Below, piece after piece: positions 16,958-20,307 of a stretch of 64,000 nt of DNA. A program made the translations under genes and the position numbers. This DNA comes from Lepidodermella squamata (taxonomy: Eukaryota > Animalia > Gastrotricha): contig JBLDXI010000020.1 of assembly GCA_047495785.1 (NCBI GenBank), positions 2,480,001 through 2,544,000 on the forward strand. Direction: 5' to 3'. Each line of letters starts with the position of its first letter. The first letter of the stretch is position 1. The notes beneath the pieces are model-generated. The model was not told the origin of the DNA and ran no database searches. It worked only from the letters and a program-made list of their open reading frames with translations.

Positions 16958-18610
16958 TTATTCCTTCGCAAAGGCGACTTTGAAAGCTTCGATCGCGCGT
17001 TTTCTAGCCATATCGTGGTCGACGATTGGTTTAGGATAGCCAAGTTTTGCGAAAACACCAGAGGCCAGCGCGTGAAAAGGATCGTGAACTGTATTATTCT
17101 TCAACGAGGCTAATTCAGGTACCCATTTTTTGATATAATCGCCAGCTGGGTCGTTCTTCTCACTCTGAAGTTTCGGATTGAAAACCCGGAAATATGGCTG
17201 GGCATCGGTTCCAGTCGAAGCCGACCACTGCCAACCGCCGTTATTCGACGCAAAATCACCATCGATCAGATGTTTCATGAAATAAGCCTCACCAAGCCGC
17301 CAGTCAATCAACAGATCTTTCGTCAGAAACATAGCAGTGACCATTCTCACTCGGTTGTGCATCCACCCGGTCGCGTTCAACTGCCGCATACCCGCATCGA
17401 CGATCGGATAACCGGTTTTTCCTTCACACCACCGCTGGAAATTTTCGGGGTCGTTGCGCCATTTCACGTAATCAGACGAGATCTTGAACGGTTTGCCGCG
17501 AACAACTCGCGGGAAAAAGAACATCACATGACGGTAGAAATCACGCCAGCATAGTTCGGATATCCACGTGACAATGCCCTCATTTCCAGTGGTGATTTTG
17601 CTAATTTTAGGCGGGTCGTCCGATTTCGGGTCGGACTTGATGCCAGCAACGATGCACTCACGTACTGAAACAGCACCGATTGACAAATAAGGCGAAATGC
17701 GGCTCGTGCCAGGCTGCGCCGGAAAGTCACGTGACTTTTTGTAGCCAGCTGACTTTTCGAGGATAAATTTGACTAGAATCTCCTTTATTTCAGCATTTGA
17801 TGCCGGCCATTCTTTACGAATTGTTTTCGCGTAGTCAGGGTCTTTCATCTCAAAACCTTCGACAGATTTAGGCACTTCTTCTTTTTCAACAGATGGGAAC
17901 GGCTTGCACACGTTTTTACCGGGCGGTGGCGATATTTTCAAGCATTCTGGGTTTGCTTCGATGTATTTGTACCAGGACGAACGGAAGGGCGTGAAAACAG
18001 TGTAAGGCTTTTGTTCTTTAGTCAAGATGCTACCGGGCTGGGCAATGCATTGATCGTGAGTAGGATGGACTGAGATTCCTTTCTTTGACAAATAATCGTT
18101 GACGTACTTGTCTCGAGCAACTTCATCCACTTCGTATTCGCGATTGAAAAATATGGCAGACGCACCGATTTCTCGACATAGCTTGAGCAAGATTTGAGGG
18201 GTGAGTTTGCTATCAGTTGAGTCTTCTTCATCTCCAGAGGGTAGCTTATCAGCTGGTTCGCCGTTATAAACTCGAGGCAAAAACGAACCATGGCGAATGT
18301 ATAGAGGAATCGCGTAGTTGTTCCATAGCTCTTTCTTCAACTCGGCCAGAGTTCGTAGAATCAAGTCAACCTTACAAGGGGCTAGATCATGGGCTCGATA
18401 CTCTTTTTCGGCGATGACGTAAACAGCAGCAACGCCTTTGCCGTTAGAATGAAGAAACGCGTTATGAAGAGCTGGATTGTCATTCACTCGTAGATCTGTT
18501 CGAAACCACATCAAAGCTGGCCCGCCGGCACTATCTGAAGCATCAGATGCCTCTTTCTTCAAGCGCTTCTTCTCGTGACCACCATCTTCGTCGCCAGATT
18601 TGCCAGGCAT
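16958..18610 (-). CDS. phr: Class I CPD DNA photolyase, copy A (canonical active site), intronless
   Basis: [94 protein letters not shown]. First ATG at 18610 (the ORF track starts at a TTG). Confidence 0.93.
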   Translation of the reverse strand: [550 protein letters not shown]

Positions 18611-18729
18611 AAAATTCAACAGTTTGTTCAAAAAATCTACGGCCAAAAACAAGTATAGATTCGTTGCATCTCAATATCATACGCACTTTCTGCATATTCT
18701 CAAAACAACCAAAAATAACTAAATAAAAA

Positions 18730-20307
18730 TTACCACCGTTTTCCCGACTTTGGTCTAAAAGCATCTTGGGCTCTATTTCTAGCAACTTCGTGCTCAACCA
18801 TAGGAGCCGGGTAGTTTAATCGAGCAAACTGAGCCGGTGAAAGTGTCTTGTGTGGGTCATGAACGTGTTCATCGCTTAGTGAAGCTAATTCAGGTACCCA
18901 TCGCTTGATGTACTGCCCATTTCCGTCGTACTTCTCGCCTTGAAGCTTAGGGTTGAAAACTCGATTCGGTCGAGGGTCAGTTCCACTGGAAGCAACATAT
19001 TGCCAACTGCCGTTATTCGAAGCAAAGTCCCCGTCGATTAGATGCTTCATGAAAAAGGCTTCGCCCCAACGCCAATCAATTAGCAGATCTTTAGTGAGAA
19101 AACTAGCCACAACTTGCCGAGTCCTATTATGCATCCAACCAGTTGCAAGCAGCTGTCGCATGCCAGCGTCAACGAATGGGTAGCCCGTTTTACCTTCACA
19201 CCATCGTTGAAATTGCTCAGGATCATTGCGCCACTCGACATAATTTGCAGAAGGTTTCAGAGGTTTCCCCTTACACACATGGGGAAAATTATGCATTACA
19301 TGCCGAAAGAATTCTCGCCAGCATAATTCAGATATCCAGTGAACAAGGGCCGGGCTGCCATCAGTAATCAAATTGATGTTTGGAGGACTGACAGCACCGG
19401 TGCAAATGACTGCTCGGATGCATTGACGGACAGATATACAGCCGATAGATAGATAAGGTGACAAGCGACTAGTGTTCTTAGCAGGAAAATCGCGAGAAAC
19501 ATTGTAGTGAGACAATCTTGTTGTGACGAAGTCGTTTAAGAATGATCTTGCCGCATTCGCACCTGGCGGCCAGTATTTTTGCACAGTAGCGAGAAACTCG
19601 GAATCGGGAGGCTCAAAACCATCGAGCTTATCAGGTACTTCGTCGGGTGACGGAGGAATTGTGTCAGGATTTCTGCTCGGAACGGGGGAGACGTTGAGAC
19701 ATTGCGGATTATCTTGAATGTATTTGTACCATACGGTTCGGAAAGGGGTGAATACCGTTAGAGGCTTTTGATCTTTCGATTTTATTGTACCAGGAGGGGC
19801 AACACATTGATCATGGAAAGGATGAACAGAGATTCCATGTTTCGTCAAACACTCCGAAACGTATTTATCACGCACAGCTTCGTCATACTCGTATTCGCAG
19901 TTGTAAAAGAGCGATGTAGCACCAGTTTCGCGGCACAGTTGCAAGAGAATTTGAGGAGTGAGCCTGCTGGCACTGGAATGTATCGCTTCGTTGCCATCGG
20001 GTAGCTTATCAGCTGTTATTTTGTTGAAAACTCGCGGCAGAAAAGAGCCACTCCGAATGAAGAGTGGAATTGAATGATTCTCCCATAGCTCTTTCTTCAG
20101 CTCCTTGACGGATCGCAGAATAAGGTCGACCTTTGCAGGTGAAAGATCATGCGCGGCCCATTCTTTCTCTGCAATGACGAATACAGCAACAACGCCTCGG
20201 TCAGCTGCGTGAACGAAGGAGTTGTGTAAAGCAGGATTATCGGCCACACGCAGATCACTACGGAACCACATCAACGAAGGACCTTTCATCAGCTTTTTAG
20301 CCGCCAT
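18730..20307 (-). CDS. Class I photolyase paralog, copy B, with CRY-DASH-like substitutions, intronless
   Basis: Collinear with copy A ([48 protein letters not shown]) but has NRTRQVVAS and [23 protein letters not shown]. Confidence 0.9.
   Translation of the reverse strand: [525 protein letters not shown]

Follow-up and report, generated by a model that had tools for sequence, protein, structure and literature searches.

A tandem pair of class I-type photolyase genes in the genome of the gastrotrich Lepidodermella squamata, with one canonical and one DASH-like pocket

Two adjacent photolyase genes have been analysed in the gastrotrich Lepidodermella squamata, in a stretch of 64,000 nucleotides (hereafter the window) from contig JBLDXI010000020.1 (positions 2,480,001 to 2,544,000 of the forward strand). 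Both lie on the minus strand, next to a synaptojanin gene. The upstream copy, phrA (18730..20307), is an intronless open reading frame (ORF) of 525 amino acids that appears to encode a class I-derived photolyase paralog, and the downstream copy, phrB (16958..18610), is an intronless ORF of 550 amino acids predicted to encode a canonical photolyase of class I for cyclobutane pyrimidine dimers (CPDs). They are genuine genes of the host, integrated in its genome and expressed as eukaryotic mRNA. The explanation that best accounts for the whole set of observations, and which is considered probable, is that a class I gene was acquired, that it was duplicated in tandem, and that phrB has remained a standard photolyase while phrA is diverging.

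An earlier reading, made from the sequence only, had described two intronless photolyase ORFs at this place and had proposed an ancient horizontal transfer followed by tandem duplication. Both ORFs are indeed present, with full-length domains, and only the start of the downstream one has had to be corrected. In the list of ORFs phrB extends over 16958-18652, with a TTG start at 18652. The true start is almost certainly the first ATG, at 18610, because the TTG falls within the 3' untranslated region (UTR) of phrA, the cDNA of which ends at 18663/4.

Host integration and expression

The evidence that phrA and phrB belong to the host genome comes in part from DNA contigs (X1) and from the cDNA sets of two other studies (X2 and X3). 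The X1 contigs are 100% identical to the window. They connect the 5' end of synaptojanin with phrB (16714-18370) and also extend over phrA, with similar depth. The X2 cDNA contigs, which carry SMART adaptors, include spliced synaptojanin and cover both photolyase ORFs. The two genes are covered by X2 and X3 cDNA at 98-99% identity, and no splice joints are seen inside phrA or phrB in these cDNA contigs. Polyadenylation of phrB is documented by an X3 contig that holds 22 non-templated T before 16849 (on the plus strand), 109 nt beyond the phrB stop. The 3' UTR of this gene, with its poly(A) addition site, is thus located at 16849..16957 (minus strand); a SMART cDNA adaptor is found at 16901 in an X2 contig. 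With respect to composition, the GC content of the two genes (0.47) and that of their third codon positions (GC3, 0.43-0.49) are within the range of the neighbouring host exons, in comparison with which no foreign signal was found in either measure.

A second species holds the same arrangement. On a 47.6-kb metagenome contig (L001), two photolyase genes, encoding P0001 and P0002, lie side by side (3341-6590) in the order ASC channel, Cys-loop receptor, photolyase, photolyase, synaptojanin, and ADAMTS. P0001 and P0002 are 65% and 54% identical to phrB, respectively, and are the two closest database proteins. The source of this contig is a relative of the window species, and a branching enzyme from the same or a close species is 87% identical to the one encoded in the window. 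The named animals matched by an exon of this enzyme are distant (59-64%), and in its tree the host, which has small introns, lies on a long bilaterian branch with no affinity to Brachionus. The search of related species suggested by the sequence-only reading has yielded the photolyase-photolyase-synaptojanin order in a relative.

Sporadic class I photolyases in animals have often been suspected to be contaminants (PMC9498864; E. coli-like cases in PMC6889759), and one might suppose in the same way that the pair of the window stems from contamination by a fungus or protist, or from pieces wrongly joined in the assembly. This explanation is extremely improbable. The order beside synaptojanin recurs in an independently assembled contig of another species, a DNA contig joins the 5' end of synaptojanin to phrB at similar depth, both genes are covered by the cDNA of two other studies, and their GC and GC3 values are host-like. 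Because DNA contigs, cDNA, composition and second-species synteny agree, contamination and chimeric assembly, which the sequence-only reading had named as what could undo it, are effectively excluded.

Class I assignment and the active site of phrB

Both proteins, which have 63% identity in an alignment of 516 residues, contain the Pfam domains PF00875 and PF03441 (E-values between 1e-37 and 1e-85). In a search of the PDB, the best solved relative of both copies is the E. coli photolyase 1DNP (1.5e-103 for phrA and 9.9e-110 for phrB), followed by the enzyme of A. nidulans (1e-81), plant cryptochromes (CRYs), the DASH proteins (1e-41 to 1e-51), the 6-4 photolyases and animal CRYs (around 1e-37), and class II enzymes (around 1e-10). 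The NCBIfam models give a similar ranking, in which the E. coli-type model (PRK10674) is first, followed by the 8-hydroxydeazaflavin (8-HDF) type, plant CRY, DASH and phr2. The four animal proteins (phrA, phrB, P0001 and P0002) reach 435-483 bits with PRK10674 (435-471 for the pair of the window, 435 being the score of phrA), just below its equivalog cut-off of 506 bits, which is tuned for prokaryote annotation. With the CRY-DASH model (TIGR02765) they score 205-229 bits (226 for phrA) against a cut-off of 317, and with the class II model 41-69 bits. The motifs on which the sequence-only reading had based its assignment to class I enzymes of the type that uses methenyltetrahydrofolate (MTHF) occur in the translations of both ORFs, and the assignment itself is borne out by the match to 1DNP, the distance to class II and the conservation of E109. 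As judged from these comparisons, phrA and phrB are class I, MTHF-type-like CPD photolyases by family, closer to class I than to any of the other classes.

Active-site residues were examined in a table of 122 family members, with E. coli numbering taken from alignments to 1DNP, in which the residues could be matched unambiguously. In phrB, 27 of the 27 checked positions for catalysis, binding of flavin adenine dinucleotide (FAD), MTHF binding and the Trp triad are canonical. Both copies keep the Trp triad (W306/W359/W382), N378 (which faces the flavin N5) and the FAD contacts Y222, T234, S235, S238, W271, R278, W338, R344, D372 and D374. The residue of the MTHF antenna site, E109, is invariant in 122/122 sequences, both copies included, and position 108 is an Asp, as in 51 of the 122. 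The pentad of the CPD pocket (E274/W277/N341/M345/W384) is intact in phrB, P0001 and P0002, and it is broken in phrA.

According to these residues, phrB would bind FAD and probably MTHF, would flip a CPD out of duplex DNA into the pocket formed by E274, W277, N341, M345 and W384, and would split the dimer by blue-light-driven electron transfer from FADH-. A basic KKRLKK stretch in the N-terminal extension of phrB may act as a nuclear localisation signal. For phrB and phrA alike, the enzymatic activities and the subcellular targeting are predictions made from the proteins' sequences.

The altered pocket and the fate of phrA

In phrA, the positions equivalent to the E. coli pentad are occupied by E327, W330, N394, Q398 and Y437. 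The two replacements, M345Q and W384Y, are each unique among the 122 relatives. In addition, G381S is found in P0002 and in no other relative, and Y395N together with the loss of F396 has altered the PYFR motif, which is one residue shorter. The codons of the altered pocket lie at 18997..19116 on the minus strand (Q398 at 19114-19116, S434 at 19006-19008, and Y437 at 18997-18999). Where X2 and X3 contigs extend over these codons they show no difference, so the changes are not a sequencing error.

It has been reported that the pentad of E. coli photolyase is E/W/N/M/W, while that of the Arabidopsis CRY-DASH protein CRY3 is E/W/N/Q/Y (PMC5812317), and the Met-to-Gln pocket position has also been discussed (PMC7610064). 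On alignment, phrA carries the CRY-DASH pentad on a class I scaffold, and what it shows is a resemblance to DASH proteins, not membership of their family. It falls below the cut-off of the DASH model and groups with phrB, P0001 and P0002 with high support (100/99). The preference of DASH proteins for single-stranded DNA and their poor binding to duplex DNA depend largely on surface residues (PMC5812317), and therefore the pentad alone does not predict a single-strand specificity of phrA.

Differences between strains separate the two copies further. These differences were counted among the 40 that are listed out of 71, which limits all the synonymous and nonsynonymous counts that follow. phrB shows at least 19 synonymous differences and, among those listed, no nonsynonymous ones, and phrA at least three synonymous and at least six nonsynonymous ones, an asymmetry with a Fisher p of 2.2e-4 and pN/pS values of about 0.59 for phrA and 0 for phrB. 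The six replacements listed for phrA span codons 86-318, and none of them falls in the FAD-binding domain (residues 324-518). phrB is under strong constraint and phrA is relaxed. The two copies, which the sequence-only reading had treated as equivalent, are not so, as only phrB combines a canonical active site with strong constraint. Synonymous diversity also differs about six-fold between the copies, with a pS of 0.052 in phrB and 0.008 in phrA, and the lower value of phrA may reflect a bias of the listing, or an effect of haplotype or conversion.

The divergence of phrA can be read in more than one way. One possibility, which is real although it is not the one we favour, is that phrA has no new role and is simply a duplicate in decay, which would end as a pseudogene. 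The pN/pS of the gene, the replacement of two otherwise invariant pocket residues, the residue lost from the PYFR motif and a branch that is the faster of the two in the tree would all be expected from such a process. On the other hand, the window and two other data sets all show an intact ORF of 525 codons, and the gene is transcribed. Its probable orthologue in the related species, P0002, is likewise intact, every residue of the FAD-binding site and of the Trp triad is retained along with N378, the six nonsynonymous differences listed all fall outside the FAD-binding domain, and both pocket changes are exactly the CRY-DASH states instead of random ones. A bolder proposal is that phrA, after the duplication, independently re-evolved the CRY-DASH pocket, through M345Q, W384Y and the remodelling of the PYFR loop, with a division of labour between phrB, acting on CPDs in duplex DNA, and phrA as a DASH-like enzyme or photoreceptor; this is put forward tentatively, as a conjecture of low probability. 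In the more cautious scheme adopted here, phrA would be a flavoprotein with a pocket in the DASH state, drifting towards a weaker or altered use of substrates (such as CPDs in single-stranded or unwound DNA), towards a sensory role or towards slow decay.

Relatives and phylogenetic position

In a word-indexed search, the best named relatives of the pair are proteins of early-diverging fungi, with 43-48% identity. They belong to Ambispora, Funneliformis, Acaulospora, Basidiobolus, Neoconidiobolus, chytrids, Mortierellomycota and Umbelopsis. Outside the fungi, matches were obtained in the jakobid Andalucia and in Planctomycetota/Phycisphaerae (44-46%), and there are no named animals among the best 120 matches of this search. 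A HMMER scan of 1.84 billion representatives (about 15 billion proteins) gave P0002 as the nearest protein, at 55%, with all others at about 52% or less. JGI metagenome contigs scanned for further members of the host lineage gave a best match of only 45%.

A careful tree of 90 rows was built under the LG+C20+F+G4-PMSF model, with supports given as ultrafast bootstrap/SH-aLRT. In this tree a eukaryote-type clade is split from the bacterial clade (Planctomycetota) at 100/97, and the four animal proteins form one clade at 100/99. Within the eukaryote-type group, which is mostly fungal, there are several deep branches, and the animal clade is one of them; the other branches are the core fungi (chytrids, Glomeromycota, Zoopagomycota and Mortierellomycota), Umbelopsis plus Andalucia, a clade of 14 members, and a group that is placed with weak support as sister to the animal clade. 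The sequence-only reading had placed the relatives among fungi and gammaproteobacteria. The first half of this statement is upheld by the eukaryote, fungal-type clade. The second half is not, as the bacteria are a separate group made up of Planctomycetota.

The 14-member clade (contigs L004, L005 and L006; proteins P0023 and P0019) comes from compact contigs with a conserved order of LITAF, AMP deaminase, GCS, photolyase, SF3A1-like and NOC4/CBF genes. The named relatives of its AMP deaminase are all fungal (61-69%), and the clade looks like an uncultured fungal lineage according to these neighbours. The sister group consists of compact-genome eukaryotes, in which an order of UAA-transporter, photolyase, ARID and Fe/Mn-SOD is common to two members. 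Photolyases of this group are located at 1727-3244 of L007, 5257-6855 of L008 and 10001-11632 of L002, and P0067 lies in an AT-rich stretch (32% GC) that is gene-poor under prokaryote-style gene calling. Two members, P0041 and P0067, had come out as sister of the animal genes in a quick LG+G4 tree; this position was not robust under the site-heterogeneous model and was not used to name a donor. As for the jakobid, P0018 from Andalucia godoyi groups with P0088 from Umbelopsis (82/91) and is not basal, a grouping which may point to frequent transfer between eukaryotes, or to frequent deep paralogy, within the subfamily.

Transfer or vertical descent

The standard animal repertoire consists of class II and 6-4 photolyases, DASH proteins and CRYs, and rotifers are listed with class II, DASH, 6-4 and DCRY (PMC9498864). 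Class I has been recorded only in prokaryotes, fungi, ciliates and euglenozoans, and in no animal group nor in choanoflagellates (Mei & Dvornyk, PMC4564169, Table 1). More recently, Deppisch et al. (2022, PMC9498864) found 'CPDI' sequences sporadically in animals (sarcoptiform mites, Nematostella and Oikopleura dioica), and considered transfer, contamination and misclassification as their possible sources. The view of the sequence-only reading that class I lies outside the usual animal set is thus in agreement with both surveys. None of the sporadic animal sequences is among the closest relatives of phrA and phrB, either in the best 120 named matches or in the HMMER scan, which argues for separate origins of the two sets.

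Resting on this distribution, the most parsimonious reading is a transfer from a non-animal eukaryote, either a fungus or a fungus-like protist, and we regard it as likely, with direction and source deduced from the pattern of relatives. In this scheme, a single gene would have been acquired horizontally before the window species split from the sampled relative, would have landed upstream of synaptojanin, and would then have been duplicated in tandem.

Several points weigh against the transfer. A tree in which all known fungi are monophyletic, with the animals, the jakobid and the bacteria outside and the unknown rows left free, exceeds the result of the free search by 0.93 log-likelihood units, and the approximately unbiased (AU) test does not reject it (p-AU 0.525). 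Nesting of the animal clade within Fungi is not shown by these data, and they do not single out a donor lineage. The sister group of the animal clade, formed by P0243, P0250, P0252, P0041 and P0067, is weak (85/79), and if these eukaryotes were holozoans, vertical inheritance would gain weight. The animal survey by named relatives covered phyla other than that of the host. Finally, the absence of introns is weak evidence for a transfer and has been set aside as an argument, since exons of 1.2-2.2 kb are frequent in the host genes of the window. Of the history proposed by the sequence-only reading, then, the tandem pair stands, and the duplication is probably old, while the horizontal transfer is the most parsimonious explanation and not a demonstrated one.

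The main alternative is that class I was retained vertically from an opisthokont or earlier ancestor, with parallel losses elsewhere and a later tandem duplication. The AU result just described leaves room for it. The presence of the jakobid and other eukaryotes in the eukaryote-type clade implies that this type is old in eukaryotes, the fungal ancestor has been inferred to have had class I (PMC13521097), photolyases are often lost (PMC9498864), and the composition of phrA and phrB is fully host-like. Against this, vertical retention needs about a dozen parallel losses (in choanoflagellates, sponges, cnidarians, deuterostomes, ecdysozoans and most spiralians; PMC4564169). Other animals are absent among the closest relatives in the best 120 named matches, the HMMER scan and the JGI contigs, and the sporadic class I sequences of the animal literature are not among the top matches. 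Altogether, vertical retention is regarded as a minority possibility, clearly less probable than the transfer.

A direct bacterial donor, for example from Planctomycetota, is much less plausible still. Planctomycetota and Phycisphaerae are nearly as similar to the animal proteins as the fungi are, and there is a published precedent in Panagrolaimus (PMC6889759). The careful tree, nevertheless, places the bacteria in a clade apart from the eukaryote-type clade to which the animal genes belong, as does the quick LG+G4 tree (support 100*), and the animal proteins have the longer, eukaryote-type length and an N-terminal extension. Transfer from a non-animal eukaryote is accordingly retained as the preferred reading.

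History of the pair

The careful tree joins phrA with P0002 (99/95) and phrB with P0001 (99/92). Quartet site patterns agree with it (26:11:6), and their signal comes mainly from the FAD-binding half; four derived states, G381S among them, are common to phrA and P0002. This evidence favours one duplication before the split of the two species, from which two lineages would have come, phrB/P0001, which is conserved, and phrA/P0002, which is faster. The changes to Gln and Tyr in the pocket came last and solely in the lineage of the window. The AU test on a set of 25 rows is less favourable to this history, as it rejects neither independent duplications (p=0.216) nor positional orthology, which it disfavours marginally (p=0.068). 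The N-terminal part carries a mixed signal, and gene conversion may have taken place there.

The order of the paralogs with respect to synaptojanin is swapped between the two species. In the window the divergent copy is followed by the conserved one, while on L001 the conserved copy (P0001) is followed by the divergent one (P0002). Such a swap may have come about through the loss of different members of a longer array, or through gene conversion.

Transcript layout and neighbouring genes

The 5' UTR of phrA occupies at least 20308..20486 on the minus strand, as cDNA contigs extend to 20486 (X2) and 20442 (X3), and depth on this side of the gene drops to 0 past 20612. From its sequence, a putative AT-rich promoter region of phrA may be placed at about 20570-20650. 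At the other end, the X2 and X3 cDNA contigs both start at 18663/18664, so the minus-strand segment between the two genes (18611..18729) is made up of the phrA 3' UTR (18664-18729) and a very short intergenic or 5' UTR stretch ahead of the phrB ATG. The 3' end of phrA is followed after 24 nt by an AG acceptor, and the phrB ATG comes 28 nt later. Likewise, a pyrimidine-rich AG is found about 23 nt from the phrB poly(A) site, and the synaptojanin ATG 15 nt beyond it. This tight packing of phrA, phrB and synaptojanin on the minus strand (16809-16849 and 18610-18664) would resemble that of trans-spliced operons, and no spliced leader was seen in the cDNA contigs aligned over the three genes.

The first exons of synaptojanin, which encode its SacI domain, lie at 15928..16809 on the minus strand (Pfam Syja_N, 9e-52; ATG at 16809), and the exon for the 5-phosphatase is also present in the window. 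The distance from the phrB stop to the synaptojanin ORF is 148 bp, on the same strand, exactly as the sequence-only reading had it, and the introns which that reading ascribed to the gene are seen as GT..AG introns in X2 cDNA (15252-15306, 15666-15927 and 16629-16682). The same reading had placed a GPCR (G protein-coupled receptor) and Pax6 nearby. A Pax gene is indeed there, with a paired domain at about 32200-32560 (minus strand) and a homeodomain exon at 28664-29782. The paired domain was found by a motif scan and had been missed by Pfam on the listed ORFs, apparently owing to the frame of the ORF. The support for a GPCR is poor, since the candidate ORF (24704-25291) has only a match to Srx below the cut-off (E=0.0096). 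Other animal genes of the window encode an axonemal dynein heavy chain, a glycogen branching enzyme, a peroxisomal-type (ABCD-type) ABC transporter, and a gamma-glutamyltranspeptidase.

Two further features of the window can be mentioned. A low-GC stretch (0.376) without long ORFs extends over 22000-26000, between phrA and the next gene-like ORFs. At 58369-61086, on the plus strand, there is an ORF of 905 amino acids with a GC content of 0.385, in which the reverse-transcriptase domain PF00078 is matched at 2.8e-34. This ORF is probably a non-LTR (non-long terminal repeat) retrotransposon, situated directly after a gamma-glutamyltranspeptidase-like exon (57250-58347).

Comparison with known systems and significance

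The closest parallel is with the fungal Phr1-type enzymes (of Glomeromycota, Basidiobolus, chytrids and Mortierellomycota), which are likewise members of the eukaryote-type clade, show 45-48% identity in alignments that span above 90% of the length, have two domains and about 500-570 amino acids with an N-terminal extension, are encoded by a single exon, and have all their catalytic residues in common with phrB. The pair described here differs in its animal host, in its tandem arrangement by synaptojanin, and in forming a separate deep branch without supported nesting in any sampled fungal phylum. With E. coli PhrB (1DNP), the phrB of the window has in common the Trp triad, N378, the FAD contacts, E109 and the CPD pentad, whereas the animal genes belong to the eukaryote-type subclade and encode an additional N-terminal extension, as well as some 30 residues inserted into the N-terminal domain. 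Compared with CRY-DASH (Arabidopsis CRY3), phrA has the same five pocket residues (E/W/N/Q/Y), but it is class I by descent, and its relatives phrB and P0002 keep the Met and the Trp.

Among animals, the photolyase of Panagrolaimus (Schiffer et al. 2019, PMC6889759) is also of a non-animal type, is integrated among animal genes in a stress-tolerant micro-invertebrate, and has been read as a transfer, which is regarded as validated. That case was compared with bacterial homologues, while the genes of the window have eukaryotic, fungal-type relatives, are duplicated, include one copy with a remodelled pocket, and are syntenic in a second species. The animal 'CPDI' sequences of mites, Nematostella and Oikopleura (PMC9498864) are likewise class I outside the standard repertoire, and for the genes of the window both integration and expression are shown. 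The horizontal acquisition of repair genes by micro-invertebrates and the sporadic presence of class I in animals have already been published, and no principle is overturned here; the most original element is the DASH-like paralog phrA.

In view of the linkage, the poly(A), the second-species synteny and the purifying selection, this pair ranks with the better-documented examples of a non-animal photolyase class that has become fixed in the germ line of an animal, and it helps to tell real acquisitions from contaminants in surveys of animal cryptochromes and photolyases. It may also have a bearing on the UV (ultraviolet) tolerance of a small, probably light-exposed invertebrate. With regard to the family, phrA constitutes a natural experiment on the residues that turn a pocket for CPDs in duplex DNA into a DASH-type pocket. 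If the re-evolution of that pocket were true, it would be a natural replay of the way in which a DASH-type function arises from a class I scaffold.

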